A stretch of DNA of 64,000 nucleotides from sequence record OR805293.1, one strand, 5' to 3'. Below the pieces are notes generated by a model, which made no database searches, was not told the DNA's origin, and was given only the letters and a program-made list of their open reading frames with translations. Of the stretch, positions 10,574 through 63,172 are shown one piece after another; the first letter of the stretch is position 1, and the number at the start of each line of letters is the position of its first letter. Position numbers and translations under genes: made by a program.

Positions 10574-10606
10574 AAAGAAAAGCGCTTTTATATGCGCTTT
10601 TCTTTT
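10574..10606 (+). terminator. intrinsic terminator
   Basis: AAAGAAAAGCGC-ttttatat-GCGCTTTTCTTT. Confidence 0.8.
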
Positions 10607-10664: not shown

Positions 10665-10907
10665 ATGCAAGAAATTATAGTGTACAGAAATCCGGTAGAA
10701 GCAGCGTTTTGGTCGAGCATGCAAGACGGAAATATTGTACTTTTTCTTGTGACATTTATGATTATGGCAGTATCATTAGTGGTAATGTTAGTAGCTCTGT
10801 ATAACACATTTGTTGTTAATAAACGGGTTCGCAATAAATGGATTTATGTTCCTGTTGTGTTAGGAATTTTAATTTCTATGATAACATGCTACAATCTATT
10901 TTTGTAG
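10665..10907 (+). CDS. small membrane protein
   Basis: Two TM segments; AGGA RBS. Confidence 0.75.
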   Translation: MQEIIVYRNPVEAAFWSSMQDGNIVLFLVTFMIMAVSLVVMLVALYNTFVVNKRVRNKWIYVPVVLGILISMITCYNLFL

Positions 10908-10919
10908 AACGAAAATCAA

Positions 10920-10947
10920 TAAAAAGGGCTTAAAGCCCTTTTTATTT
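10920..10947 (+). terminator. intrinsic terminator
   Basis: AAAAAGGGCT-taa-AGCCCTTTTT. Confidence 0.8.
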
Positions 10948-14538: not shown

Positions 14539-14760
14539 CATATAAAAGTATGCGTATAATTTGCACATATAACGCAATAGCACAGCAACAAACAAAACGT
14601 AATAAAAAAATGTTGCAATAGCTTAAAAGTTTTAGTATAATAAGCACATAACAACGCAATACAGTTTACAAACAAAACGTAATAAAAAATGTTGCAATAG
14701 CTTAAAAGTTTTAGTATAATAAGCGTATAATGCAGCTTATATAACAAGTTAAAAACCCCT
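14539..14760. other. GA/TC-dinucleotide-free tract containing the tRNA promoters
   Basis: 222 nt with no GA and no TC (includes an internal duplication). Confidence 0.85.
14613..14720 (+). promoter_or_regulatory. tandem duplicated sigma70 promoters for the tRNA cluster
   Basis: Two copies of TTGCAA-tagcttaaaagttttag-TATAAT (14613-14641, 14692-14720), each with an upstream A-tract; period 79 bp. Confidence 0.85.
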
Positions 14761-14833
14761 CGGTAGCTCAGTTGGTTAGAGCGCGCGACTCATAATCGCT
14801 AGGTCACTGGTTCGAATCCAGTTCGAGGGACCA
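14757..14833 (+). tRNA. tRNA-Ile2 (CAT, lysidine type)
   Basis: Cloverleaf; anticodon arm GCGA-CT-CAT-AA-TCGC as in bacterial Ile2; CCA encoded. Confidence 0.85.
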
Positions 14834-14855
14834 ATTTTAAGATGTTGTGCTTTTA

Positions 14856-14940
14856 GCCCGAGTGGTGAAATTGGTAGACACAGGAGACTTAAAATCTCCC
14901 GCTTCGCAGCGTACCGGTTCGAGTCCGGTCTCGGGTACCA
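14856..14940 (+). tRNA. tRNA-Leu (TAA)
   Basis: Cloverleaf with long variable arm; CCA. Confidence 0.97.
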
Positions 14941-14990
14941 AACAAAAGATATAAATACTTAACAAGATAGGAAACTATTCTAAAATTAAA

Positions 14991-15066
14991 TGGCTAGTAG
15001 CTCAGTTGGTAGAGCAAGTGACTGTTAATCATTGGGTCGTAGGTTCGAGTCCTACCTAGCCAGCCA
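14991..15066 (+). tRNA. tRNA-Asn (GTT)
   Basis: Cloverleaf; TGGCTAG/CTAGCCA acceptor stem; CCA. Confidence 0.97.
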
Positions 15067-15092
15067 ATTACACTTTGTTGTATATTCAATAT

Positions 15093-15168
<76 letters not shown>

Positions 15169-15237
15169 ATTTTAAATAACATTTGTATCTAAAGAGATAC
15201 AATAGTCTAAATAAAATATTCATATAATGTTTCAAAC

Positions 15238-15314
15238 GGGACTTTAGCTCAGTTGGTTAGAGCGCGCGACTCATAATCGCTAGGTCACTGGTTCGAATCC
15301 AGTAAGTCCCACCA
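15238..15314 (+). tRNA. tRNA-Ile2 (CAT), second copy
   Basis: Body identical to 14757 copy; different acceptor stem GGGACTT/AAGTCCC; CCA. Confidence 0.85.
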
Positions 15315-15364
15315 ATTTTTATATACAAATCAAACTATACTTAAACTATATAATGAATGAATAT

Positions 15365-15449
15365 GCCCGGTTGGTGAAATCGGTAGACACAGGAGACTTA
15401 AAATCTCCCGACGAAAGTCGTGCCAGTTCGAGTCTGGCACCGGGCACCA
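15365..15449 (+). tRNA. tRNA-Leu (TAA), second copy
   Basis: Cloverleaf with long variable arm; CCA. Confidence 0.97.
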
Positions 15450-16391
15450 AACTCCTACAAAAGGAACATATTATAGTATGTTCCTTTTTTATTATGATAT
15501 TTTTATTATGAATGAAATAATGCATATATCTGCCAACACATACGTAATAGAATATCGCGTATTAAACAAGTTAGTAGTCACTATAAAAAATAATAGATAT
15601 TTTACATTATGGGTACATTTTGATATCGGTACATTTTCTATGGCATGGAAATACAATGCAATATAGAATTAAAAAATGAAATACATTATTAATTTACAAT
15701 ACTCAACAGAAGTAATATATATGCCGTGTTTCAACATAATATCGTTATGCGATAATAGATCTGTTACTATCCTTTCTATTACTATGATATTTAAGATAAG
15801 ATACTATTTGCATCCGATGTTCCGTTATATTCTATAATACATAATATTTTTATTGTAACAAATACCAGAAGTGCTTAGATAATATATAGCAATTCTGTTT
15901 ATTATCGATATTGCGGTATACTTAGTATTTCTTATTAACCGTATTACATAGAATAAAGAATGGAAAAAATTTTAACTATTTCACATAAAACATTAATATG
16001 TGAACTGTCGTTATTAAACTGGTCGAAATCCATAGTTTGTGCATATTCTGGCGAAATAATATGGTATGTTCGGTTGCATAAGAAATGTTATGTAGTACAG
16101 CTAAGATGATAATGAACTGTATTTTTTCCTATTCGTACTATTTAGAACGCATCGTATGTCATGCAAAAATCTACAAAGGGTTTGTAGTCAGTAAAAATAC
16201 TTTTTGTGAGAAATCCGTAATAGCTTTATACTTAATAAATAGTGGTAGTTATTTTCATAAATGTTATGTCGATCATTACTTAATTGTATAGATATATTTT
16301 AATAAAAATAGTTGACCGAACAAACAAAACAGTATATAATGTTACGCATATAAAGCATTATTACAAAGCTATCATTAGTTGCACAAGATAT

Positions 16392-16468
16392 GCGCTCGTA
16401 GCTCAGCTGGATAGAGCATCCGCCTTCTAAGCGGATGGTCGGGGGTTCGAATCCCTCCGGGCGCGCCA
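16392..16468 (+). tRNA. tRNA-Arg (TCT)
   Basis: Cloverleaf; CCA. Confidence 0.97.
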
Positions 16469-16488
16469 ATTTTAAAGAGTGTTGTGTT

Positions 16489-16719
16489 ATGCAAACAATA
16501 AGATTTGACATAAGACTTCTTCGTTATAGTATGAAACAAGGTTTCTGTTGCATAGGTAAAGATATATTTGAAGTGTGCAGAAAAACTCGGATCAGTCCAG
16601 GTCAGCTAAACTTACGAAAAAATTATATAGGACGAGTATTAATCGGAATTGATTCGAACTACAATCTGCACAATACCTGTTTAGTAGGCTGGACTCGCTA
16701 TAAAAATATTATAGTATAA
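16489..16719 (+). CDS. hypothetical protein
   Basis: First ATG after tRNA-Arg within ORF 16435..16719. Confidence 0.5.
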   Translation: MQTIRFDIRLLRYSMKQGFCCIGKDIFEVCRKTRISPGQLNLRKNYIGRVLIGIDSNYNLHNTCLVGWTRYKNIIV

Positions 16720-16736
16720 AAATTTATATTAATAAT

Positions 16737-16979
16737 ATGAATAGATGCAAAGAACATCTACAATACAGAACAATCAAAAAGCATACATTAACTTGTAGGA
16801 AATGCAAAGAGTTATCGTTACAAATAAAATTATTTTGGCTTCAACAACAAGCATTCAGTATTAGAACCGATACTAGCGGAATATACATATTCGATATTAA
16901 ATATAATTCTATTTACGTATACTCTGTAGCTTGGTATAATACAGAATTATACGGTAAAGGGAAAATAATTTTAGAATAA
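16737..16979 (+). CDS. small hypothetical protein
   Basis: ORF track. Confidence 0.45.
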   Translation: MNRCKEHLQYRTIKKHTLTCRKCKELSLQIKLFWLQQQAFSIRTDTSGIYIFDIKYNSIYVYSVAWYNTELYGKGKIILE

Positions 16980-17007
16980 ACATGTATATATAAGAGTACC
17001 TCAAATA

Positions 17008-17340
17008 ATGAATAATTATTCTAATGATACAGATATTCTAAAATGGATAAAGCGTAACAATAGAAAAAATGCACGTCTAATTTCATATATAGACGGAATA
17101 TATAATATTGTTTATTTCGATGGCGGAAAAGCAAGAGTTGGCATAGTAAAAGACAATATGCACTGCAGATACGGAATACATAGTCGTGGATCTATGTATT
17201 CGAAAGATATAATGAGCCTGTGGCAATCTAGTACAGGTTCGTGTTCGCCCGATGATGTAAAGATTATGCAAGATTATCTAGACGATAAATGCATACTTCC
17301 GGAATTTGATTTTTCTCAGATTAAAAATTTAAAATGGTAA
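17008..17340 (+). CDS. hypothetical phage protein
   Basis: 110-aa ORF with globular composition. Confidence 0.75.
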   Translation: MNNYSNDTDILKWIKRNNRKNARLISYIDGIYNIVYFDGGKARVGIVKDNMHCRYGIHSRGSMYSKDIMSLWQSSTGSCSPDDVKIMQDYLDDKCILPEFDFSQIKNLKW

Positions 17341-17363
17341 ATAATATAACAATATAGTTTTAT

Positions 17364-17440
17364 CGCAGGGTATGCAAGAGGTCTAAGCAGAAAGGCTCAT
17401 AACCTTTTTATCGTGGGTTCGAATCCCACCCCTGCAACCA
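17364..17440 (+). tRNA. tRNA-fMet-like initiator (CAT)
   Basis: C1:A72 mismatch; acceptor CGCAGGG/CCCTGCA; CCA. Confidence 0.85.
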
Positions 17441-17449
17441 GTTTTATAT

Positions 17450-17526
17450 CTAGGCATAGCTCAAGTAGGTAGAGCACTTGCTTTGGGAGCAAGAGGTTGG
17501 GGATTCGAGGTCTCCTGCCTAGACCA
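17450..17526 (+). tRNA. tRNA-Pro (TGG)
   Basis: Cloverleaf; CCA. Confidence 0.95.
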
Positions 17527-17535
17527 ATTTACTAT

Positions 17536-17608
17536 GCAGTCCTAGCTCAATTGGTAGAGCACTGTCCTTCCAAGTCAGATGTTACGGGTTCGAGTCCCGT
17601 GGGCTGCT
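17536..17608 (+). tRNA. tRNA-Gly (TCC), CCA not encoded
   Basis: Cloverleaf; discriminator T followed by CAA. Confidence 0.92.
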
Positions 17609-18337
17609 CAATATTCTAATATAATCGATGATTCGTGTAGTGGATAAATATGGAAGTATAGTTATACCATCTAATATAACGGTGCTGGAAATACAGGCAT
17701 ACACAACAGAGTTAGTGTATGTAAGAAAATCTCATTGTTTATGTTTATACATTCCTAATATAGGAAATTATGCTTTATGGTTTTTAGACAGATAGGATAA
17801 AAATATAAATCGATATTGTTCTGTTTAAGGAACCAACATTAAATGGCAGGTTGCATATTTAGACTCGATTTGTCTATTTTTCGTGAAAATGTATATAGTA
17901 TTTCTAGGTTGTCTTATACAAAATCTATATGTGTTTCAATAAAAACTAAACCGACAAGCAATAGAAGACAATTAGAAATATATGTTGTAGATAAAACAAC
18001 TGATTTTTTAGTTGCATGCAAATATTTTTAGCTTATCTATTTTGACTTGCCTTTAAAATAAATAACCATTATATATTTGATATAACAACTATTCTAAATA
18101 GAAATAAAACCATAAATACACATAATAACGGTGTGGATTTATGGAAAACATATTTAGGATATCTATTAATGCTAACGAAGGTATTATACGAATATCCCCT
18201 ACTTACTTTTTTAATGGTGTTTTTTATTCAAAGCATTTGAATATTTTTATAATAGATCCCGACGGATATCTAATAAGAAAAATATATACTTGTAGTACAT
18301 TCTTATGATGATTTCTTTTAAATATACAAAATAGCAT

Positions 18338-18366
18338 TTGACACAAGTATAATTATTTCGTATAAT
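18338..18366 (+). promoter_or_regulatory. consensus sigma70 promoter
   Basis: TTGACA-17-TATAAT. Confidence 0.9.
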
Positions 18367-18397
18367 AAGTGTATAAAATAACAAAAGAGAATTTTAA

Positions 18398-18757
18398 ATG
18401 ATTTCCAAAATTCAAATTGTATACGGAATATATCTTCCTACTGCTGATGCAAAAATTATATACGAAGACTCGGAATACGAATCTAATAAAATAAATAAAA
18501 ATATTAGATTATTTGCAAATGATGCATATTTAGAAGATAAGATTTTAGAAAATAAGGAATTCGAAGATAATCCCTATGTTCCGCACTTTTATGGTATTTT
18601 TTGTAAAGAATTCGATAATGACCAAAGTGCATACTTATATAATGTTCCCAAATCTTTTATAGATGAATATAATAATGTAGCTCCAGCTATTTTGGCTAGA
18701 CTCGGTTATTTAGATAGAGTTGCAGGAAAACAACATTGTAGAATAATCTACGAATAG
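18398..18757 (+). CDS. hypothetical protein
   Basis: ORF downstream of consensus promoter. Confidence 0.75.
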   Translation: MISKIQIVYGIYLPTADAKIIYEDSEYESNKINKNIRLFANDAYLEDKILENKEFEDNPYVPHFYGIFCKEFDNDQSAYLYNVPKSFIDEYNNVAPAILARLGYLDRVAGKQHCRIIYE

Positions 18758-18771
18758 AATTAACTAGTTTT

Positions 18772-18861
18772 GGAGAGGTGATAGAGTCTGGTTTATTATA
18801 CTAGTCTTGAAAACTAGCGGATCGAAAGGTCCCGTGGGTTCGAATCCCACCCTCTCCGCCA
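18772..18861 (+). tRNA. tRNA-Ser (TGA)
   Basis: Cloverleaf with long variable arm; CCA. Confidence 0.96.
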
Positions 18862-18866
18862 AATAT

Positions 18867-18956
18867 AGATACTTGACCGAGTGGCTTAAGGTGCTTCCCT
18901 GCTAAGGAAGTGAGTTTGAAAAAGCTCCGTAGGTTCGAATCCTACAGTATCTGCCA
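18867..18956 (+). tRNA. tRNA-Ser (GCT)
   Basis: Cloverleaf with long variable arm; CCA. Confidence 0.96.
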
Positions 18957-42450: not shown

Positions 42451-42728
42451 AAGTTATGCGCTGTTGCATACGTAAATACCTCCTATGTTGTTTAGATATG
42501 TCGATTCTGGTATAACCAGATAGACCTAAGGATGATGCTAGTGATTCCTTAGTATTGTATATTCTAGCTGAGTATAAAGAGTAAGGGGCTTTATACAAAT
42601 AACAATTCCCTAGGCAAGATATACCGCTCCGTTGTGCTGACGAGCATAATTTGCCCAGATACAGAGCACGTGACTGGTCTGAGGAGCATTTATATCAGAA
42701 AGGCAGACTTATGTTTGCCTTTCTTTTT
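42451..42728 (+). ncRNA. candidate ~275-nt structured ncRNA (ncRNA-2)
   Basis: Bounded by promoter and terminator; no credible ORF; several stems and a possible pseudoknot. Confidence 0.65.
42697..42728 (+). terminator. intrinsic terminator
   Basis: AGAAAGGCAGAC-ttat-GTTTGCCTTTCT followed by TTTT. Confidence 0.85.
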
Positions 42729-43219: not shown

Positions 43220-43302
43220 GTATACAAGCTTAAGGGGTAAGTGCCCCGAAAGTGTAGTAAGTAAACAACATAATCCTTCCATCAGCTACAGAGGTATACA
43301 AC

Positions 43303-44007
43303 ATGTCCGTACATATCACTCGTCAACGTACCGACAAACAGCACGTCCTGGCACTGGCAATCAACGGCGTGGTCATCGGCCAGACTATGGCTACTTACAC
43401 CACCCCGAGCAAGCGCACCTGGTCGGCGACCGCTGAAGTCGAACTGGCAGACGGCACCGTCGTACAGTTCGAGCAGAAAGAAGTGTTCAGCGCGATCCGC
43501 ATCACCCGCGAAATCGAGCAGGCGCTCGACGGCAAGGAACTGGCGGCCAAGTACACCCCGGAACCGAAAGTTCCCGGGCAGAAGGGTCCGAAACCGCTCA
43601 CCGACGAAAGCCGGCTCAGCAACGCGATCGCGATCGTCAAGGCGGCCATCACCCACACCGGCTTCGACGAAGCTACCCTGGTGTTCGACGGGGTCGACAA
43701 GGCCAACTTCGAGCAGAACAGCACCTCCGTCGGCAACAAGCTGCGTCGCCTGGGCTTCGTCTTCGAACTCGGCGCCGGCAAGGCGAATAGCGGCAAGGGC
43801 TTCCTGATCAACCGCAAAGCGCAGGCCGAGGCAGAAGCTGCCGAACGCAAGGCCAAGCGCGATGCCGAGAAGAAGGAACGCGAAGAAAAAGCGGCGGCTG
43901 CCAAGCGCGAAGCTGACGAACGCAAGGCCAAGCGCGAAGCCGAACGCGCTGAAAAGGTCGCTGAAAAGAACGCAGCGATCGCCGGGGCAGCGCAGGAAAG
44001 CAAGTAA
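43303..44007 (+). CDS. very GC-rich protein with Ala/Lys/Glu/Arg-rich C-terminal tail; paralog of 62563..63018
   Basis: GAGGT RBS; host-like codons; shared NGVV.GQ...VQF.Q..VFSAIRI domain. Confidence 0.9.
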   Translation: MSVHITRQRTDKQHVLALAINGVVIGQTMATYTTPSKRTWSATAEVELADGTVVQFEQKEVFSAIRITREIEQALDGKELAAKYTPEPKVPGQKGPKPLTDESRLSNAIAIVKAAITHTGFDEATLVFDGVDKANFEQNSTSVGNKLRRLGFVFELGAGKANSGKGFLINRKAQAEAEAAERKAKRDAEKKEREEKAAAAKREADERKAKREAERAEKVAEKNAAIAGAAQESK

Positions 44008-44022
44008 TTGCCCAACTGCGCC

Positions 44023-44052
44023 GAAAGGGGAGCAAATTGCTCCCCTTTCTTC
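44023..44052 (+). terminator. intrinsic terminator
   Basis: GAAAGGGGAGCA-aat-TGCTCCCCTTTC. Confidence 0.85.
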
Positions 44053-44620
44053 ATGACCATATAATCTATATACTACTGTGTCTTTAACTATATTTTCTAT
44101 ATCAGCTAGTTTGTATGCAATAACTTGGTATTCTATGCCAGCGACACAATGCTGTTATATAGACATAATAACACGCGACGCTGATATTTTTATAACCTAT
44201 CCATTTTATAATAACATACTTGTATCTAAAATTATTTCTAATACAATACCTGTAGGAAGTTATGAACACTATATTAGAGATATGTCGTGGAATAAGAAAT
44301 GATCATATAACAGTCAATAATTTTACATATGACTACTATCTAGAGGTAAACACACCTGTGTTTTCTTTAATGATAATTATTCCAACAGTTCCTATATTAG
44401 ACAATACTTGCATTACTTTTATAAAAAAGTATTAATATGAATATATTCTTTATATCAAACAGTCTATCTAATATACTATATCATAAAGCTTATGATATAC
44501 ATATGATAGATATTAATATTAATAATTCTACTTCTATTTGGCTTACATATTCTTTCAATATTGCTAAGGTATCATTTAAATATATTATCTAATTCATTTT
44601 CTTATTGTATGAATTGTAAT

Positions 44621-49704: not shown

Positions 49705-49830
49705 TTCGTTTGCTATACGTACTAATACGTTGTATACTGTTAGTACGTATAGTAGAAGTAACATATAACGTTTTGAGTTAAGGGAACCATAACATAAAAA
49801 AGAATTTGAATTGAGGTGCCCTACGAGTAG

Positions 49831-50325
49831 GTGTTCGAGATGGAGCAAATAGTGAATATGCGAGAAGTGACATTTCTTTCCGCAGTGGATGCCAGCAAGA
49901 TCGAGACGCCGAGCAACGTCATCAGCATCGGCAGCAAGGGTGATTGGTATGCCTTTGCCTGCGATCACAAGCGCGTTCTGCGGCTGGAGTTTGATGACGT
50001 AGACGGATACGTGGGAAGCGATGGCTTTCGAGTGTTCAGCCACATTGACGCCAAGCAGATCCACGACTTCGTGAACGAGTGTGGTGATGAACCGATCATT
50101 GTTCACTGCCAAGCAGGCATGAGCCGATCCGCTGCGGTTGCCAAGTTCCTAGCTGACAAGCGCGGCTACACCTTGAACCTGTCGAAGCCTTGCTTAGGCA
50201 CTACACAATTCTACAACCGCCACGTCTACGGAACGTTGAACCTCAACAACGCCGAAAGCATGAGCGCCTATTACGCAGAGATGGAGCTAGCCGACCGGAC
50301 GCGTGGCCATCCAAAGGAGTCCTGA
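49831..50325 (+). CDS. protein-tyrosine/dual-specificity phosphatase-like protein
   Basis: Active-site CX5R motif IIVHCQAGMSRSAAVA; upstream LEFDD acid loop. Confidence 0.88.
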   Translation: MFEMEQIVNMREVTFLSAVDASKIETPSNVISIGSKGDWYAFACDHKRVLRLEFDDVDGYVGSDGFRVFSHIDAKQIHDFVNECGDEPIIVHCQAGMSRSAAVAKFLADKRGYTLNLSKPCLGTTQFYNRHVYGTLNLNNAESMSAYYAEMELADRTRGHPKES

Positions 50326-50327
50326 TC

Positions 50328-50627
50328 ATGCCTGACATGAGAGAAGAGTTTGAAGCCGCAATCTTTGCGGAAGTGAATGAACAGCGGGCTGCTGAAGGTG
50401 AATTTGTCCTTCAGCATCCAGAAGGGCTATTTGCCCGCGATGACGATGGCTCCTACTTGATCCGTTGGGTCAAGAGCGCATGGTGGGCCTGGCAAGCCAG
50501 CCGCGCAGCTCTGAGAGTGGAGTTGCCGAAACCTCACCCTGCATTTGAGTACGCACCTAGAGCCAAGGTTTTCAATATAACTGACGTTGAGGTAGCCCTC
50601 CAGCAAGCCGGAATCGAGGTGAAGTGA
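50328..50627 (+). CDS. hypothetical protein, temperate-phage-like
   Basis: AAGGAG RBS, ATG 50328; MREEFEA...AWWAWQASRAAL pattern. Confidence 0.75.
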   Translation: MPDMREEFEAAIFAEVNEQRAAEGEFVLQHPEGLFARDDDGSYLIRWVKSAWWAWQASRAALRVELPKPHPAFEYAPRAKVFNITDVEVALQQAGIEVK

Positions 50628-50774
50628 ATGAGAACGCCCATCTTCATCGGCGGATCAATTGGCATAGGAATCGCCTATCTGATGAATCCTGAATATCCCG
50701 CTATCGCGCTTGCAATGGTGTTTAGCGCGGGTACCTCATTGTTCATTCACTATCTATCTGAGGTATGGCCATGA
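50628..50774 (+). CDS. small membrane protein (48 aa, not in ORF track)
   Basis: GAGGT RBS; coupled at both ends; two hydrophobic segments. Confidence 0.55.
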   Translation: MRTPIFIGGSIGIGIAYLMNPEYPAIALAMVFSAGTSLFIHYLSEVWP

Positions 50775-50845
50775 CCGACCACGCAGAGCTGCGGAGGCTG
50801 GCTAAAGAAGTGATCCGAATTGAACGAAATGAGGATGCAGCATGA
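50771..50845 (+). pseudogene. 24-aa Ead/Ea22-like N-terminal remnant
   Basis: MTDHAELRRLAKEV...; ATGA-coupled on both sides. Confidence 0.45.
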
Positions 50846-51378
50846 GCATTGACTGGACCAAGGCACCAGAGGGTGCGACGCACTACCAACCGGAATCACG
50901 CGGCTTCCATGCGGCATGGTTCCGACTTCAAGGGGGGAAGGCTCGCGAAATGTGGGTCGTGAGACCCAGCCGCGCGCTTGAGCACATCATCGATCCGACT
51001 GTCTTCGACGAGAGCATGCAGAACCTGATCGCCCGCCCCGTAGAACCTGCCACCTGGAACGGCCAGGGCCTGCCGCCGGTTGGCCTGATGGTGGAGTGGA
51101 AGGCAGGCCTTGATCACGACTGGCAGCGCGTAACCGTGCTTGCCTACGCCAATGGCGACGCGTGGTTTCAGCCCGAGGATGGCCCGTCTTTCATCGTCGG
51201 CAACCCGGCAAACTTCAGGCGTATCCGCACCCCCGAGCAGTTGGCCGCCGAGGAGCGGGAAAAGGCGATTAATCAGATGATTTCTGATGCTGGATACGTA
51301 GATCCGAAGATTGGCACATTTGTGGCTATGCGCAATCTCTACGACGCCGGCTACCGGCGCCGGGAGGAAGGGAAATGA
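50842..51378 (+). CDS. hypothetical phage protein
   Basis: MSIDWTKAPEGATHY; W.G.GLPPVG; LYDAGYR patterns. Confidence 0.8.
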   Translation: MSIDWTKAPEGATHYQPESRGFHAAWFRLQGGKAREMWVVRPSRALEHIIDPTVFDESMQNLIARPVEPATWNGQGLPPVGLMVEWKAGLDHDWQRVTVLAYANGDAWFQPEDGPSFIVGNPANFRRIRTPEQLAAEEREKAINQMISDAGYVDPKIGTFVAMRNLYDAGYRRREEGK

Positions 51379-51641
51379 GCAGACTGACAGCTGAGCAATC
51401 CCGTGACATAGCGCGAGCGAAAGACGATGTCGATACTATCCTCAACGACATCGCCAAATCAGCCGCAGAAGGAAAGTACGTGTACACTACCCGCGCCTAT
51501 GGGTTCGGCACAGGCGGCGGACGGCGCAGCGACGCGATCCTCAAAGTGTTGCGTAGCCTCGGCTACGACTGTGCGGTGCATGCTGAGGGACGCCAGTCTG
51601 TTGACCTGTGGCTTGAAGTGAAATGGGGAGACAAGCCATGA
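51375..51641 (+). CDS. hypothetical protein
   Basis: ATGA-coupled; GGAAGG RBS. Confidence 0.75.
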   Translation: MSRLTAEQSRDIARAKDDVDTILNDIAKSAAEGKYVYTTRAYGFGTGGGRRSDAILKVLRSLGYDCAVHAEGRQSVDLWLEVKWGDKP

Positions 51642-52057
51642 CTAACAACCCCGGAGATTCAAAAATGATCGTAGAAAACGCCAAGCAAGCTGCCGAAGAC
51701 TTCAAAACTTCCATGGCTAAGATTTTTCCGAATTACATCGCCAGGGCGTCGGTTTCCGATAACCTTGGTCCGGCGATGACAATTTCGTTTGCGAATGTCG
51801 GTTGCGCTTCCGAAGCCCCGAACAGCATTCTGATAAATGCGAGCGGTTACATGCGCTTTATGATGCATTTGTGTGACAATTGCGGGAATGTATTGCCAGA
51901 AGGTTCGCCGGTAGAAATTGAGCTGCTAATGTGGTCTATCCCCTGTCGTTCGGAAGTAATCAAGTTCCGCAAGATCAAGGGCAAGACACCAGCCGAAGCT
52001 ATGCAAAAGCTAGTCAAGTGGTTTGAAAAAAACGCCGAAGCTATCCGGGGTCTGTAA
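51638..52057 (+). CDS. hypothetical protein
   Basis: GGAG RBS, ATG 51638. Confidence 0.75.
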   Translation: MTNNPGDSKMIVENAKQAAEDFKTSMAKIFPNYIARASVSDNLGPAMTISFANVGCASEAPNSILINASGYMRFMMHLCDNCGNVLPEGSPVEIELLMWSIPCRSEVIKFRKIKGKTPAEAMQKLVKWFEKNAEAIRGL

Positions 52058-52081
52058 TGGTCTCCACGTAGGACACGCAGA

Positions 52082-52483
52082 ATGAACATTGTGTTGGACA
52101 AATTGCTGTTTGGCGGTTTCATCGACCAGCAGCGCAATGAACTTGCCCAGCAACAACTGAATCGGTTGTTTGCCAAGTACGGTGAGCCGAAGATTGGTAT
52201 CACACGGGCATGCTTTCTATCTAAGCATTACGTCCTGAAGTTCCCGATTAATGACAGGGGTGAGCGGTGCAACGATTGGGAAGGTAGCTGTTCCGGCAGC
52301 TACTTGGCACGCGGACGCTGGCTAGAAATCGGAGGCTTCATTTGTGTCATGCAAGAGCGTTTGGTTGAAGTGGATTGGAAGAACAACACCCATGCAAACT
52401 TTCCTGATTGGGTAGGCAGCATAGATTGTGGTCAAGTCGGCTACGATAAACATGGCGTTCTGAAAGCGTATGACTTCGGGTGA
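52082..52483 (+). CDS. compact protein-kinase-like protein
   Basis: GITRACF, YVLKFP (catalytic Lys), N.WE, MQERL, DCGQVG, terminal YDFG. Confidence 0.5.
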   Translation: MNIVLDKLLFGGFIDQQRNELAQQQLNRLFAKYGEPKIGITRACFLSKHYVLKFPINDRGERCNDWEGSCSGSYLARGRWLEIGGFICVMQERLVEVDWKNNTHANFPDWVGSIDCGQVGYDKHGVLKAYDFG

Positions 52484-52486
52484 AGC

Positions 52487-52678
52487 ATGACCATCAATTT
52501 GTTTGTCGTCAACATAAAGAACGAACCTATCCCAACCGACCACAAGTCGATACTCCGCTATCTTGGCCTTAGCCTGCACACGCAAGGCCGTCGTGTATCT
52601 GCCAAATTCAGCAGCGGTAAGTTGAAGCTGAACAACTACAACATCGAATTTTTTCACATGGCGGAGATGATTCCATGA
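52487..52678 (+). CDS. hypothetical protein
   Basis: ORF track; coupled to next gene. Confidence 0.65.
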   Translation: MTINLFVVNIKNEPIPTDHKSILRYLGLSLHTQGRRVSAKFSSGKLKLNNYNIEFFHMAEMIP

Positions 52679-53211
52679 CCGACACCAACAAAATAAAAAA
52701 GCTAGCAAAACTGGACGAGATCGACAGGCTCAGGGCAGAGCGAGACGCCGCCCTGGCCAGGGTCGTAGAGCTGGAACGCGGCAAGGTCTACGTCGAAGCC
52801 CGGCAATGCGACGAGTGCCAGCATGTCGGGATCAACGATTCCGCCACGGTCGTGGCTGCCTGCCACGAATGCGATTGGACCGGACCAGAGCCAGAAGAGG
52901 ATAAGTGCCCCGGTTGCCAGAGGGAGAATTGCATGGCCGCAGCCTGCCCGCAGTGTGGCGCCCGATATGTCCTTGTTGCCAGCGAAGAGATAGCCGCCCC
53001 TGTAGCCCAGGCTCAGCACAGCGTGCCAGAGGAATGGCACTGCATGCTAGCGAATCTTCAGTGGCACTACGAGCCGTATGACGATCACTACCACCGTGAC
53101 CAGGGCTTCTATTGCCCGGTCTGTGGCGGTGAGAAGGACGAAGGGCACAAGCAGGGTTGCAACCTGGCCAAGTTGATCGCCACTGCCGACCTCAAAGAAG
53201 ACAAGAAATAA
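52675..53211 (+). CDS. chimeric Ead/Ea22-like protein with Cys-rich zinc-binding repeats
   Basis: MTDTNK, DEIDRLRAERDAALARV, several CxxC motifs. Confidence 0.7.
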   Translation: MTDTNKIKKLAKLDEIDRLRAERDAALARVVELERGKVYVEARQCDECQHVGINDSATVVAACHECDWTGPEPEEDKCPGCQRENCMAAACPQCGARYVLVASEEIAAPVAQAQHSVPEEWHCMLANLQWHYEPYDDHYHRDQGFYCPVCGGEKDEGHKQGCNLAKLIATADLKEDKK

Positions 53212-53237
53212 AATTCTAAATTACTCGAACAAACATA

Positions 53238-55145: not shown

Positions 55146-55451
55146 ATGGAAGCATATACAGATTGCCCTATCCTAATGATCGGTGATGCTCCGCACGAAG
55201 AAGCACCTATAAGAAAAATAATTATAAAAGGTTATGATTTTAAATATATCTGGGCAGTATACCATTATATGGATTTAATTCCTATAAGGGTTCAGATAAA
55301 ACGCTGTTATGTGTACGAAACTCCGGGTAGAGTAGGTTATGTAAAATCTATTAGAGAAGAAGTATTAAGAAAACGCAAAAAGAAACAACGTGACATATAT
55401 GAATACGATACATATCAAGATGAAGACGATTTTTGGAAAGGAATGTATTAA
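55146..55451 (+). CDS. hypothetical phage protein
   Basis: AYTDCPI..IGD....APIR pattern. Confidence 0.7.
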   Translation: MEAYTDCPILMIGDAPHEEAPIRKIIIKGYDFKYIWAVYHYMDLIPIRVQIKRCYVYETPGRVGYVKSIREEVLRKRKKKQRDIYEYDTYQDEDDFWKGMY

Positions 55452-55452
55452 A

Positions 55453-55746
55453 ATGCATAATACCCGTATTGTTGTTCGACTCAATGTTATCACTCCTATT
55501 TCAACTGCTAATGGCGTTGTAGTTGATTCGGTAGTCCGCGGGCATCGAGCAGGCATTAAGCAAGGCAAACAAATGTATCATGTTTATTCTATTCAAACAG
55601 GCGAGTATCTCGGTTTGAAATCAGAAGACGACGTAAGTGAAATTAAACCGTCTTCGTATGAAGAATTTCTTACTCCGAGAACACTTACTTCAAACGAAGT
55701 AGAACAAGTTAAATCTTCTTTCGAATGGTACGAAGCTAACATTTGA
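55453..55746 (+). CDS. hypothetical protein
   Basis: AAGGA RBS, ATG 55453. Confidence 0.7.
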   Translation: MHNTRIVVRLNVITPISTANGVVVDSVVRGHRAGIKQGKQMYHVYSIQTGEYLGLKSEDDVSEIKPSSYEEFLTPRTLTSNEVEQVKSSFEWYEANI

Positions 55747-55749
55747 TAT

Positions 55750-55778
55750 AAAGGGGGAATAATTCCCCCTTTATTTTT
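55750..55778 (+). terminator. intrinsic terminator
   Basis: AAAGGGGGAAT/ATTCCCCCTTT. Confidence 0.85.
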
Positions 55779-55815
55779 CTTTTATAAACATAAATAATTC
55801 GCATTTGCACCGAAG

Positions 55816-55945
55816 ATGCTTTATAACGCATAAATTTACATAGCTAATACATACATATTGCTAACGTTAAAAAGCGCATTATATAGCTTATAATTGCATA
55901 TTGTGCAATGCATTTGTTGGTGTTATATTAAACATGCGCAACAAT
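55816..55945. other. GA/TC-free tract
   Basis: 130 nt with no GA and no TC. Confidence 0.8.
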
Positions 55946-55981
55946 CAACTATACAAAAACATTTATTATGGAGATACAACA

Positions 55982-56272
55982 ATGAAAAATACACTGTGTC
56001 TCGTTGCATTTTTGGGTCTCACAGTAATAGCTCATACTTATGCAGCAGATTCTGCAAATAAAGATGTGAGCACCCTCATTATGGAACAGGATCTAGAAAC
56101 ATATCTAAATGAAGAGTTTGGATTAACAGGGAAAGTTAATTGCAATAATGCTGTTAACGGAATGTTCGAGTGTGTCATGCACGACGGACAAAAGAAATAC
56201 ATGTTTGCATGTAATGCAGAAGACAGTGTATGCATAGTAGTATCTGTCCCGATTAAAGGAATTCGGTTATGA
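55982..56272 (+). CDS. secreted or periplasmic small protein with signal peptide
   Basis: GGAG RBS; MKNTLCLVAFLGLTVIAHTYA signal-like sequence; Cys pairs. Confidence 0.75.
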   Translation: MKNTLCLVAFLGLTVIAHTYAADSANKDVSTLIMEQDLETYLNEEFGLTGKVNCNNAVNGMFECVMHDGQKKYMFACNAEDSVCIVVSVPIKGIRL

Positions 56273-56457
56273 AAAAAGCTCTTTCAAGTGTAATAGGTAT
56301 CATTGTTCTGTTACTAGGCGTATTTATGGTAGATAATCCTACAATAGGATTAATGCTAGGAGGGTTAGTAGGTAGTTATATTTTCAGCATAGGCGGAGTA
56401 ATTCTATGTGTTATATCGTTTATGATATTTGCACTTGCCTTTGTTGAGATGAAATGA
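56269..56457 (+). CDS. small membrane protein
   Basis: AAGGA RBS; two TM segments. Confidence 0.7.
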   Translation: MKKALSSVIGIIVLLLGVFMVDNPTIGLMLGGLVGSYIFSIGGVILCVISFMIFALAFVEMK

Positions 56458-56610
56458 ATGCTTATTTAAGTAAATGCATAAACAGGTAACTGTATAAAGA
56501 ATAAGGAAAGATTAGATCTTGTCTGTAATAGTTATATATTTTTCAATGTAATATTCTTCATTTTCATTGCATGTGTTACAAATTAGATCACAAAAAGTTT
56601 TAAAATTCAG

Positions 56611-56639
56611 TTTACAGCATGCATAGTTTTACGTATTAT
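56611..56639 (+). promoter_or_regulatory. sigma70-like promoter
   Basis: TTTACA-17-TATTAT. Confidence 0.7.
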
Positions 56640-56645
56640 AAACAC

Positions 56646-57130
56646 ACAAAGCAATACAGCATAACGCATTGTAAGCAACACTAAACGGGAGACACCGTCC
56701 CGCAAGCAGCCCGCCCGCGATGTTCGCGGGCTGCGGCAAACAGGTGTACAAGGTCTAGTAACGTGGAAGGCGCAGCATACCTTTCCTTAAATCGGAAATC
56801 GGTCAATGACGTACCTGCCCCTGGACACTGCTAGACCTTGCTGCTACAGGCGGGACAGCTACAAAGGTACACTGTATGTATCTATGCTTTACCCCGCTTT
56901 GTAGCAGGTCTTAAAACGGTCTACTGGCATATGCCTTAGTGCTAGTAGGAATCATTAACCTAAAACTATTATATGCTTCCTGGAGGTGAAGAGTATGCCG
57001 CCGCAGCATTAAATATACATTATGATGATGATAATTATGAATGCCGAAACACCGCTTCGATTCGTTTAAAAGACAGATGTCTGAATCGAATGTTTTTGGG
57101 CAAAAAGGTCCCTTAGATGGGATTTTTTTG
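56646..57130 (+). ncRNA. candidate ~480-nt GC-rich structured ncRNA (ncRNA-4)
   Basis: Bounded by promoter and terminator; long stems; no + strand ORF >=60 aa. Confidence 0.7.
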
Positions 57131-57216
57131 CGGCTGTTAACTAGCAAACGCGAATTAATCTTATTTGCAATTTAAGAAAAATACCAGTTGACTGTAGCTT
57201 GTTAACATAGTACATT
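57101..57216 (+). promoter_or_regulatory. terminator + palindromic box + promoter module
   Basis: Hairpin 57101-57130; box 57144-57169; TTGACT-17-TACATT (57188-57216). Confidence 0.7.
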
Positions 57217-57245
57217 TAACTCATAAATCCGCAGGAGTAGCAGTT

Positions 57246-57413
57246 ATGTCGCTGAAAAAGAAACTTTTAAATTCTGTGCAGATTAAATATTTCGGCAACA
57301 TTTATACTTACATTTATGATGCCGTTCATGACGTTATTTATTTCGATAACCAGCAAATGTCTTATGCCGAATTTGAAGAGGCAGTAGACTGTAAGCTAGG
57401 AGAAGTTCTGTGA
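57246..57413 (+). CDS. small protein (55 aa, not in ORF track)
   Basis: AGGAG RBS; stop overlaps next start. Confidence 0.7.
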   Translation: MSLKKKLLNSVQIKYFGNIYTYIYDAVHDVIYFDNQQMSYAEFEEAVDCKLGEVL

Positions 57414-57685
57414 ATGAATATGTTGATACACACAGAGCTAAAAGAATACTAATAATTTCTTCTATATGTTTTTTTGTAACTGGCATTCTGATAGGATACA
57501 GCCTAGCGTCGAATTCTGAGTCTGCTTCGTTATATATGCAGTATAAGGAACTTGTAAAGTCTTGCGAAGCAGAATTGCCAAGAAATGAAAATTGCCAAGT
57601 AATCGTATATGCTATACCAACACCCGAAGTAGAAGAAGAGAAACTAGAAATACAAACAATTCTTAGAGGGGTCGAAATAAAATGA
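57410..57685 (+). CDS. membrane-anchored small protein
   Basis: One TM segment; coupled. Confidence 0.7.
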   Translation: MNEYVDTHRAKRILIISSICFFVTGILIGYSLASNSESASLYMQYKELVKSCEAELPRNENCQVIVYAIPTPEVEEEKLEIQTILRGVEIK

Positions 57686-57918
57686 GCGTATACTGTAATT
57701 GCATAGCATGCGGTGGAGATGATCCGTATGCTGTATGTGAAAATGTGTTAATGGATATCCAAAAGCACAAATATAATACTGGTCCCAGCTGGGGGCTGGT
57801 AGTTGCGGCAGTATTGTGTTTGGTAGGAATGGGATTAGCAGGTAACGCAGCACTATCTGATAAAAAAGAAACACCGTGCGAAACTACACAACAAAAACAA
57901 GAGGTGTATAATGAGTAA
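57682..57918 (+). CDS. small membrane protein with Cys motif
   Basis: CNCIAC; one TM segment. Confidence 0.65.
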   Translation: MSVYCNCIACGGDDPYAVCENVLMDIQKHKYNTGPSWGLVVAAVLCLVGMGLAGNAALSDKKETPCETTQQKQEVYNE

Positions 57919-58117
57919 CAAAACAACAGACATGCTGGTAGATGAATTTCTGTGCGAGCGTGCATCTTTTTCTCCGTTTAGCGAAGGTGTTCATGCAGCT
58001 AAACTAGGGCAGAAATATACAGACTGCCCGTATACCAAAAATGAGCCGTATGAACGTAACGAATGGATTCGAGGACATCAAATGTGGCATGATTATTCTG
58101 TTCAACAATACAAATAA
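57911..58117 (+). CDS. hypothetical protein
   Basis: GAGGT RBS; G...CPY...WIRG pattern. Confidence 0.75.
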   Translation: MSNKTTDMLVDEFLCERASFSPFSEGVHAAKLGQKYTDCPYTKNEPYERNEWIRGHQMWHDYSVQQYK

Positions 58118-58132
58118 TATTCAGAGGATATT

Positions 58133-58336
58133 ATGAAGAAACTATCTATGTGCGATTTTGCCAAATGGAAGGCAAACTATTACAGCACTAATAAATCCGG
58201 TCAGCCACTCCGGCTAGGACAAGCATTTATTAACGAATTTTCCGAACAGGGTGATATGCCTCAGCCAAATCTATATTATGAAGAAGATAATGCAACTGCT
58301 GAGCTTATCATTCTAGAAAAATACATTATGTACTAA
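58133..58336 (+). CDS. hypothetical phage protein
   Basis: GAGG RBS; LRLGQAFIN motif. Confidence 0.75.
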   Translation: MKKLSMCDFAKWKANYYSTNKSGQPLRLGQAFINEFSEQGDMPQPNLYYEEDNATAELIILEKYIMY

Positions 58337-58346
58337 GGAAGTAGTA

Positions 58347-58541
58347 ATGTATCTTGCACACCTATTCGCTTTGGTCCCGTCTATGTTTGCAGTATTAATT
58401 AATGCTATCTTTATTAAATACGGTTTGGGACCTGCTTCTATAATAGTATTTATGGCCTTAGTTGTAACTGTAACAGGAATTGGGTCTGTAATAGATATGA
58501 TGCGTGCATTGTCTGAAGTAGACAATATTATTGATAGATAG
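58347..58541 (+). CDS. small membrane protein
   Basis: AAGGA RBS; two TM segments. Confidence 0.7.
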   Translation: MYLAHLFALVPSMFAVLINAIFIKYGLGPASIIVFMALVVTVTGIGSVIDMMRALSEVDNIIDR

Positions 58542-58866
58542 TATTTATGTATGCATAAGAGAACTTATGAAACTCAACGAAGTTACTACAATTTCTGATC
58601 TAGACAATATTCCTGTCACTGACAAATTTATAGTTGTCGGCGAAGATATGGTAGGTCTTGCTTTTATCGATAACGATGGAAAGTTAAATGATGGATTCTT
58701 TTTTGAGTGTACTTATACTCAGAATAAGGAACAAATATTTAAAGCTGTTCAACATTTAAAAAAACAAGTAGATGAATTAAATAATTGTAATAAAGAGAAA
58801 GTTATAGCACATATCATGCGAGCTCCTGAGTTTGCATATGTTTGGGTATACTTTGAACAAAAATAA
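58531..58866 (+). CDS. hypothetical protein (start possibly downstream)
   Basis: ORF track. Confidence 0.65.
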   Translation: MIDSIYVCIRELMKLNEVTTISDLDNIPVTDKFIVVGEDMVGLAFIDNDGKLNDGFFFECTYTQNKEQIFKAVQHLKKQVDELNNCNKEKVIAHIMRAPEFAYVWVYFEQK

Positions 58867-62498: not shown

Positions 62499-62527
62499 GT
62501 AGACATTGTGTAGCATCCCTAGTAAGC
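62499..62527 (+). promoter_or_regulatory. sigma70-like promoter
   Basis: TAGACA-17-TAAGCT. Confidence 0.6.
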
Positions 62528-62562
62528 TACACACACATAAACAACACAACGGAGTACAAGCT

Positions 62563-63018
62563 ATGTCTAATGTAAGCATCCCTGCAGTAACGGTAGAGAA
62601 CATCGGCACCCTGCGCATTGTGCGCACCGCTAACAAGGAGGTCGGAAGTGTGCTCGACCTAAAAGTTAACGGGGTAGTAGTAGGGCAAGCTTTCCCGCTC
62701 TACAGCACAAAAACCCAGCGTAGCTGGAACGCAAGCATGCACGCTACCGTTAACGGTGTAGAGGTGCAGTTTGCACAGGAAGGCGTGTTCAGTGCAATCC
62801 GCATTGCACGGGCGTTCGAGGATGCAGTAAAGCATGCCGTTAGCAACGGCGAGCAAGGGCAACCCCTCCCCGCGCCGGCGGCGCAGTCCGATGCCCCGGC
62901 AACGGCAGAAGCGCAAGCAGAAGCCCCGGCGGCGCAGACCGAGGATGCGCCGGAGACCCTGGCAGCCGAAGCTAAGCCCGCCCGCAAAGGCGGCAGCAAA
63001 GGCGGCAGCAAAAAGTAA
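62563..63018 (+). CDS. very GC-rich protein with Ala/Pro linker and basic tail; paralog of 43303..44007
   Basis: GGAG RBS, ATG 62563; NGVVVGQ...VQFAQEGVFSAIRI; ends KPARKGGSKGGSKK. Confidence 0.88.
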   Translation: MSNVSIPAVTVENIGTLRIVRTANKEVGSVLDLKVNGVVVGQAFPLYSTKTQRSWNASMHATVNGVEVQFAQEGVFSAIRIARAFEDAVKHAVSNGEQGQPLPAPAAQSDAPATAEAQAEAPAAQTEDAPETLAAEAKPARKGGSKGGSKK

Positions 63019-63172
63019 GCGCTGCTAACACAGGAAAGGGGCAACTGCCCCTTTCCTTTTATGTCCTAGTTGTAAATGCAAATTAATCTTATTTGCATTT
63101 GCACAAGTCATTCTCCTGTTGCATTACTGCTTTAAGATGTTAGTATATATGTAGCTATACGGAGTAATTGCT

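Follow-up and report, generated by a model that had tools for sequence, protein, structure and literature searches.

The closest described relative of the RNA gene analyzed here is ncRNA002 of the Pseudomonas aeruginosa jumbo phage PA5oct, a non-coding RNA (ncRNA) annotated from strand-specific RNA sequencing (RNA-seq) (Lood et al. 2020, PMC7318152). According to Table 1 of that publication, ncRNA002 is transcribed from the plus strand and accounts for 4.65, 5.04, and 1.23% of all phage reads at 5, 15, and 25 min, respectively; it is stated there to lack a plausible open reading frame (ORF), a known promoter, and similarity except to phage MIJ3 (PMC7318152). Combining these shares with the phage share of reads (21, 69, and 92% at 5, 15, and 25 min; preprint of Lood et al. 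2020) indicates that ncRNA002 reaches its maximum in mid infection, when it makes up a few percent of all non-rRNA reads. The publication gave neither promoter, structure, nor function, and the literature yielded no later functional study of ncRNA002. The present analysis concerns the corresponding locus of Pseudomonas phage Deifobo, a PA5oct-like jumbo phage. The sequence analyzed is a 64,000-nucleotide (nt) stretch of record OR805293.1 (hereafter, the window; record coordinate = window coordinate + 124000), in which a structured ncRNA with its own promoter and terminator had been proposed from the sequence at positions 56611–57130 (hereafter, the original prediction).

The 801 bases around the locus were 100% identical to Deifobo in a blastn search of phages, and ten other Wroclawvirus records (family Arenbergviridae, PA5oct-like jumbo phages of P. 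aeruginosa) showed 94.6–99.1% identity at the locus. PA5oct matched the flagged stretch with 94.6% identity over 97% of the query, with the same flanking genes, position, and strand. The PA5oct GenBank record (MK797984.1, 21951–22401, locus EST35_0068) carries here the feature [quoted passage not shown], which projects by alignment onto window positions ~56658–57113. The flagged stretch is evidently the ortholog of PA5oct ncRNA002, with which it shares its neighbors, strand, extent, high early and mid-infection transcription, and the absence of an ORF or known function. It differs by ~15 point differences and by two elements that are replaced in PA5oct, namely, a hairpin (P2, 56715–56735) and an AT-rich spacer (57011–57040). 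The existence of this RNA has therefore been known since 2020, and the claim of the original prediction that it is novel does not hold. New in this analysis are the domain map of the RNA, the two blocks replaced in PA5oct, and a conserved hairpin containing GGAGGTGA 8 nt ahead of a five-codon ORF (MPPQH).

Transcription of the locus was assessed by mapping contigs from four public RNA-seq runs onto window positions 55200–58700. In two runs, the summed contig depth was 4–9 × 10^5 over 56721–57071 compared with 1–8 × 10^3 in the flanking genes, i.e., ~100-fold higher, and carry-over of DNA cannot account for a step of this size. The depth dropped ~10-fold in the bin containing the terminator (57072–57188) and ~50-fold more beyond it, to ~1.4 × 10^3. 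The contigs of these two runs carry flank variants (C at 56574, A at 56583, and a 109-nt insertion at 56460) indicating that they derive from a phage other than PA5oct, so that they corroborate the publication as independent evidence. The remaining two runs belong to different studies and are labeled with different organisms. Each contained a single contig in the 3.5-kb region (56658–57053 and 56705–57111) with zero mismatches, for which the simplest explanation is that traces of an extremely abundant RNA were carried over from one library to another. The contig end at 56658 coincides with the boundary of the PA5oct annotation. Since the contigs have no direction, the assignment to the plus strand is taken solely from Lood et al. 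2020.

The promoter lies on the plus strand at 56590–56639 and comprises an UP-like A/T-tract AAAAAGTTTTAAAATTCAG, a −35 box TTTACA (56611–56616), a 17-nt spacer, and a −10 box TATTAT (56634–56639). As had been proposed, TTTACA-17-TATTAT is present at 56611–56639, and it was the top plus-strand promoter match of the scanned region (10 of 12 positions). The segment 56584–56639 is invariant in ten phages, and 2–3 sites vary at the very beginning of the UP-like element. The A/T-tract upstream of the −35 box may work as an UP element. Transcription is predicted from the −10 box to start at ~56647–56650. At the other end, the proposed terminator is present as an intrinsic terminator GCAAAAAGGUCCC-UUAGAU-GGGAUUUUUUUGC (57100–57131, plus strand) consisting of an A-tract, a hairpin, and a T7 run; it is visible in the sequence, in the fold, and in the collapse of RNA-seq depth. 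A consensus scanner overlooked it, apparently because the stem reaches into the A and U tracts. The changes found in this terminator in phage phi30-2 preserve the pairs. Together with the PA5oct annotation and the contigs, these signals delimit a plus-strand transcript of ~450–485 nt at 56647–57130, a discrete and highly abundant RNA like PA5oct ncRNA002 and at the same position. We are confident that this is a real stand-alone ncRNA gene of PA5oct-like (Wroclawvirus) jumbo phages, as the original prediction had claimed. An orphan structured RNA ranks among the most abundant early transcripts of PA5oct-like phages, which are candidates for phage therapy and one of which, Paride, replicates in deep-dormant, antibiotic-tolerant P. 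aeruginosa.

The folding of the transcript was analyzed with dinucleotide shuffles as controls. The plus strand folds with −168.6 kcal/mol (z = −6.1), and none of 100 shuffles was as good; the minus strand gave z = −3.7 and the PA5oct equivalent z = −5.1, with a background of −1.4 ± 1.6 in 25 other windows of the Deifobo genome. The number of stems of at least 8 base pairs (bp) was 18 compared with 11.2 ± 3.7 in the shuffles (P = 0.06), which is not clearly above chance, and the longest stem had 12 bp compared with a shuffle mean of 10.5 (P = 0.18). The GC content is 0.55 at 56700–56899 and 0.33 in the window. The proposal that high GC implies selection on pairing is unsafe when taken alone, since several GC-rich islands of this genome are coding; the z-score, the absence of codon periodicity, and the substitution pattern described below rescue it. 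All helices listed in the original prediction were found on the plus strand, i.e., GCAGCCCGC/GCGGGCTGC (56706/56726), CAAGGTCTAGTA/TGCTAGACCTTG (56749/56829), GCTACAAAG/CTTTGTAGC (56858/56897; out-competed in the thermodynamic model), CTACTGGCA/TGCTAGTAG (56921/56940), and TTCGATTC/GAATCGAA (57056/57083), as were the segments CGGGA (56686), GTCCCGC (56697), and GCGGGAC (56850).

The minimum free energy (MFE), centroid, and alignment folds were concordant on the following domain map, in which all features are on the plus strand. A C/A-rich 5′ leader (56647–56685) is mostly unpaired in the centroid fold. It is followed by the P1 hairpin CGGGA/UCCCG with the loop GACACCG (56686–56702; mean pair probability 0.82) and by the GC-rich P2 hairpin (56706–56734), which in PA5oct is a different GC-rich sequence, 3 nt shorter and forming an imperfect hairpin. 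P3 is a 92-nt irregular rod (56749–56840) closed by the 12-bp helix CAAGGUCUAGUA/UGCUAGACCUUG (p = 0.97), and all three of its variable sites (56787, 56800, and 56823) are unpaired. P4 is a 67-nt rod CUGCUACAG-GCGGG / CCCCGC-UUUGUAGCAG (56841–56907), which wins over the competing helix GCUACAAAG/CUUUGUAGC of the original prediction (p = 0.95 versus 0.00); the change G56849A in this rod turns a G-U pair into an A-U pair. The P5 hairpin CUACUGGCAU/GUGCUAGUAG (56920–56949; p = 0.96) has the loop AUGCCUUA, in which the variable site 56935 is located. An invariant hairpin in an AU-rich stretch (56973–57009; −9.5 kcal/mol for the locally folded 56968–57016) and the AT-rich variable spacer (57011–57040) precede the P7 hairpin UUCGAUUC...GAAUCGAA (57056–57090; p = 0.95), after which UGUUUUUGG extends to 57099; this 3′ element is terminator-like or resembles an Hfq-binding module. 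The C57087U change in P7 of PA5oct keeps the pair as G-U. Long-range pairs predicted for Deifobo, including those of the spacer 57011–57040, and an AU-rich “P6” helix are absent in PA5oct, and these modeled elements are not trusted. In addition, the motif GA(G/A)ACACCG occurs twice, in the P1 loop (56692–56696) and ahead of P7 (57049–57053), and both copies are able to pair with a single GGUGU at 56743–56747, where a pseudoknot or long-range contact is possible.

The ten phages compared are ~99% identical across the ncRNA. In the core, only 1 of 162 paired columns varies, namely, by the above change from G-U to A-U, compared with 6 of 79 unpaired columns (Fisher p = 0.0056), and in the whole RNA without the replaced blocks the substitutions also avoid the predicted stems (p = 0.016). 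Together with the extreme fold z-score, this pattern is indirect support for the RNA being under selection. In PA5oct, the P2 hairpin and the AT-rich spacer have been swapped wholesale while the rest is nearly constant, which suggests that the replaced blocks are peripheral or spacer elements.

The original prediction had further described an alternative-pairing switch, taken here as a riboswitch-like RNA toggling between the local CGGGA/UCCCG and the distal GUCCCGC/GCGGGAC pairing. The complementary segments are real and the distal pairing is a perfect helix of 7 bp that would close a neat three-way junction around P2 and P3; in addition, a duplicated GCUACA gives UGUAGC two possible partners. 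Forcing GUCCCGC/GCGGGAC, GCUACAAAG/CUUUGUAGC, or both, however, yields structures 6.8–8.8 kcal/mol above the MFE, and both alternative helices have an ensemble probability of ~0, so that two comparably stable exclusive folds were not found. There was no expression platform and no controlled gene either: two terminators come next, and a separate promoter-like site for the next gene lies at 57188–57216. No aptamer family of Rfam matched, and the sequence variation among the ten phages is too scant to support a switch comparatively. The switch is thus left with neither comparative nor regulatory support, and it is considered extremely unlikely. Attenuation by a leader peptide was also rejected, since the mini-ORF described below is too distant from the terminators for coupling.

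Protein-coding capacity was considered as another source of the high GC content. The GC-rich core shows no 3-base periodicity (chi-square p = 0.72, compared with p < 0.02 in seven coding sequences (CDSs) of the window), and stop codons are present in all six frames of the stretch; a conserved ORF with codon periodicity was therefore not found. The plus-strand ORFs of 47 and 15 amino acids (aa) are frameshifted or lost in PA5oct, and an ORF of 33 aa is frameshifted in phage Cassandra. An ORF of 32 aa (56806–56904, plus strand), located inside P3/P4, is preserved in each of the ten phages and lacks an evident Shine-Dalgarno (SD) sequence. Given the broken longer ORFs and the absent periodicity, the GC content is not explained by translation.

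Two remaining candidates for translation would make the transcript a messenger or dual-function RNA, in which a strong ribosome-binding site (RBS), GGAGGUGA, drives MPPQH as a minigene or stalling leader, or an ORF of 44 aa (57041–57175) is translated. The invariant hairpin sequesters GGAGGUGA (56982–56989), an 8-nt complement of the 16S rRNA 3′ end that has no second copy in the window, and GGAGGTGA is unique in the 64 kb with both strands counted. The AUG codon at 56995, 8 nt past GGAGG (GGAGGUGA + 5 nt), opens the ORF Met-Pro-Pro-Gln-His with a stop codon at 57010–57012, exactly where the variable block starts. SD, AUG, ORF, and stop are retained in all ten phages (TAA in nine and TGA in PA5oct), and the 44-aa ORF is likewise intact in all ten, with roughly 4 synonymous and 7 non-synonymous differences. 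On the other hand, the SD pairs with the two CCG (Pro) codons within the hairpin of −9.5 kcal/mol, and the “SD” may be no more than the G-rich side of a helix, accounted for by G-rich/C-rich complementarity. The 44-aa ORF has no SD and crosses the terminator where coverage collapses, so that the abundant RNA would miss its stop codon. The breaks in the 15-aa and 47-aa ORFs of PA5oct, the lack of periodicity, and the judgment of the PA5oct authors, who saw no plausible ORF (PMC7318152), also speak against a coding function, which we regard as improbable. Minigenes and leader peptides (lambda bar, macrolide-type pentapeptide leaders) resemble this locus in having a strong SD, an AUG, a few-codon ORF, and a stop in an abundant transcript; they differ in that the SD of Deifobo is sequestered in a hairpin with no coupled downstream gene, and translation of MPPQH is putative.

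Three CDSs annotated as “hypothetical protein” in Deifobo (Deiofobo_0343–0345) lie inside the RNA gene, at 56681–56806 (minus strand), 56911–57009 (minus strand), and 57041–57175 (plus strand), and similar small CDS calls are found within it in the records of Ettore, Paride, Cassandra, and PAC2. The minus-strand ORFs, i.e., two of the three Deifobo CDSs, are antisense to the transcript. These small CDSs are probably spurious calls, and the corresponding records of the five phages need re-annotation.

It was also considered that the GC-rich core is a by-product, i.e., a fragment caught between a promoter and terminators, or that the RNA is an origin-priming or origin-activating transcript with an AT-rich unwinding block. 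The genome holds many acquired-looking GC-rich islands, an indel hot-spot borders the locus, and the GC-rich core gives way to a rapidly changing AT-rich block. A source sequence was not found, though, in bacterial genomes, plasmids, metagenomes, or viral contigs, and a passive fragment agrees poorly with substitutions that avoid stems and with the extreme fold z-score. With respect to an origin, the cumulative GC skew climbs steadily from 54 to 60 kb with no reversal, and the RNA stops at its terminator. Both variants are taken together as quite improbable.

Searches for families and homologs suggest that the ncRNA is an orphan confined to one genus. A covariance-model scan (cmscan), as suggested with the original prediction, found no known Rfam family at the ncRNA: at the gathering threshold of Rfam 15, only 12 transfer RNAs (tRNAs) passed in the window, and at E ≤ 10 the region 56400–57300 gave only four chance-level hits of 9–16 bits. 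The families covered include GOLLD, ROOL, 6S, CrcZ, RsmY/Z, tmRNA, RNase P, group I/II introns, riboswitches, and ribozymes. ARAGORN called no tRNA or transfer-messenger RNA (tmRNA) gene in 56–58 kb. A tmRNA was rejected on this ground, and the resemblance of the 47-aa frame to an SsrA tag (“EEYAAAA...DDDNY”) is not conserved in PA5oct. A blastn “distant” search of 50,697 phage records matched the locus to nothing beyond 11 Wroclawvirus records, and blastn against plasmids returned only a 33-nt chance hit. Exact patterns were absent from IMG/VR (three patterns), JGI metagenomes (two), and GTDB genomes (two; 185,579 species genomes). The matches of both flanking proteins in tblastn were confined to the genus, and the downstream 91-aa protein fell into a single cluster among 5.8 billion proteins. 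A host-derived GC-rich fragment or a hairpin like repetitive extragenic palindromes (REP) was rejected because no genomic match was found, and a host origin of the GC-rich core is unsupported by these empty searches. Within the 64-kb window there were no repeats of the ncRNA and no similarity to ncRNA001 (42471–42706), to the GC-rich islands, or to other parts, and paralogy with ncRNA001 or the islands was rejected.

Among large RNAs of phages, GOLLD and ROOL ornate RNAs (bioRxiv 10.1101/2024.12.08.627333) are comparable in being large (> 400 nt), multi-hairpin, phage-borne ncRNAs without known function, and in both cases the phage genome also bears tRNA genes. The Deifobo RNA, in contrast, has no covariance-model match at E ≤ 10, is smaller, is found in one genus only, lies ~38 kb from the tRNA cluster, and shows nothing that points to multimerization. 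The bacterial RNAs 6S, CrcZ, RsmY, and RsmZ are abundant, stable, structured, transcribed from their own promoter to their own terminator, and act stoichiometrically on a protein, which is the favored model for how the Deifobo RNA works. It differs from them in that the Rfam models are unmatched and that the 6S rod with a central bubble, arrays of GGA in loops, and A-rich CA motifs are absent; its estimated copy number is also lower than that of 6S.

According to the explanation that we prefer, host sigma-70 RNA polymerase would initiate at ~56647–56658 at the strong promoter with its UP-like element, and transcription would end at the hairpin and U-tract (57056–57099) and the intrinsic terminator (57100–57131). 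The product of ~450–485 nt, not translated as a protein, would consist of an open 5′ leader, a core of P1–P5 (56686–56949) including the two long rods, and a 3′ part with the AU-rich variable spacer, the hairpin that looks like an RBS, and the hairpin/U-rich/terminator module. The RNA builds up to ~100 times its neighbors in early and mid infection and declines later. The folded RNA, being neither a riboswitch nor a messenger, would bind a low-copy protein partner in trans as a decoy or scaffold. This role is suggested by the abundance, the compact multi-hairpin form, the RNA's own terminator, and the absence of above-chance complementarity in the window. As a whole, the explanation of a stand-alone RNA gene encoding a trans-acting protein binder is given even weight for and against; the specific proposal of protein binding, as decoy or scaffold in host take-over, is put forward tentatively. 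If the RNA is indeed a decoy or scaffold for a host factor, it would be a novel means of taking over the host and an uncommon example of a functional large ncRNA in phages.

Several observations weigh against this explanation. No partner is known, and the set of protein-binding motifs searched for (GGA loops, AAnAAnAA repeats) was not found. According to a rough estimate from the read share, the RNA is present in hundreds of copies per cell, which is too few to sequester ribosomes or Hfq, although it is compatible with a target of low copy number, for example, a nuclease, a sigma factor or holoenzyme, a defense protein, or a phage protein. In the alignment of the ten phages, compensatory changes were seen at 0 of 158 predicted pairs, as expected from their ~99% identity, and in the absence of such changes the structure remains a prediction. 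The conserved SD and AUG of the mini-ORF and the intact 44-aa ORF also leave some scope for translation. As for known sponges, an RsmA sponge was rejected since the GGA motifs are located outside hairpin loops and PA5oct has lost one of them, and a CrcZ-like Hfq/Crc sponge was rejected since AAnAAnAA repeats are absent.

The main competitor of protein binding is a base-pairing riboregulator or RNA sponge, in which the leader or linkers pair with host or phage RNAs and the 3′ end is an Hfq-type module. The centroid fold leaves approximately 40 nt at the 5′ end single-stranded, and the 3′ hairpin is followed by UGUUUUUGG and by the terminator with a U7 tail (57056–57131). A hairpin, a U-rich segment, and a U-tailed terminator resemble the Hfq-binding module of enterobacterial small RNAs (sRNAs). 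With regard to an Hfq-dependent sRNA, the sequence module is present at 57056–57131 and Hfq binding is putative. Against base pairing, the longest complementarity elsewhere in the window is 11–13 nt, which is the chance level, and an RNA of more than 450 nt with a large GC-rich core far exceeds the needs of a seed-type sRNA. A riboregulator is consequently rated as rather unlikely, and the protein binder is preferred because the RNA is large, compact, and without a detectable target in the window.

A protein gene of the early block lies ~0.8 kb downstream of the ncRNA. The encoded 68-aa protein (57911–58117, plus strand) matched the NCBIfam model NF041886 (“Rmf/CrpP family protein”) with 29.7 bits at a cut-off of 28 bits; its score for Pfam RMF (ribosome modulation factor), 24.7, is just below the cut-off of 27.9, and there was no sequence match in the PDB. 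The neighborhood is worth mentioning because Paride (Wroclawvirus) replicates in deep-dormant cells in a manner dependent on RpoS and (p)ppGpp (PMC10761892), and the juxtaposition of the ncRNA and the Rmf-like gene may serve only as a lead. A broader proposal, that ncRNA002 is the first member of a new class of jumbo-phage RNAs that target the translation apparatus and acts together with the Rmf/CrpP-fold protein in seizing ribosomes, including the hibernating ones of dormant cells, which Paride-like phages are known to exploit, is very improbable. In this proposal, the conserved hairpin would offer the region's strongest anti-SD complement together with an AUG-Pro-Pro minigene.

The terminal-repeat region contains a second abundant RNA, the ortholog of ncRNA001 (42471–42706, plus strand), which is 99% identical to that of PA5oct. 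It starts with UACCUCCUAUG, an anti-SD-like sequence, and, since its end coincides with the GAGGAG RBS of the next gene, it may be a 5′ untranslated region. The 487-nt segment 42001–42487, upstream of ncRNA001 and overlapping its first bases, has a fold z-score of −4.9. The original prediction had also counted four ncRNAs within 16 kb; the RNA-seq data of PA5oct back only two here, ncRNA001 and ncRNA002, and ncRNA003 and ncRNA004 of PA5oct are located elsewhere in the genome.

Directly upstream of the ncRNA promoter, an indel hot-spot was found at 56460–56501, where Deifobo has 40 nt and the RNA-seq contig 109 nt. Paride, Cassandra, and PAC2 have an additional annotated ORF of 65 aa between the upstream gene and the promoter, which is apparently the same insertion as the 109-nt contig segment.

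Other parts of the window also differ from the genome average. GC-rich islands at 43276–44075, 49826–53225, and 62526–63100 reach up to 64–73% GC in a genome of 33% GC. Those at 49.8–53.2 kb and 62.5–63.1 kb contain strongly codon-periodic ORFs (e.g., 52675–53211 and 62506–63018) and were probably acquired from high-GC bacteria. The segment 10562–11023 (fold z-scores of −4.3 to −5.5) was rejected as an ncRNA candidate, since it contains an ordinary 80-aa gene (10665–10907) between the hairpin terminators 10574–10605 and 10918–10946. Finally, the 12 tRNA genes of the window are clustered at 14757–18956 on the plus strand (Met ×3, Leu ×2, Ser ×2, Asn, Thr, Arg, Pro, and Gly), a set that matches the one published for PA5oct.

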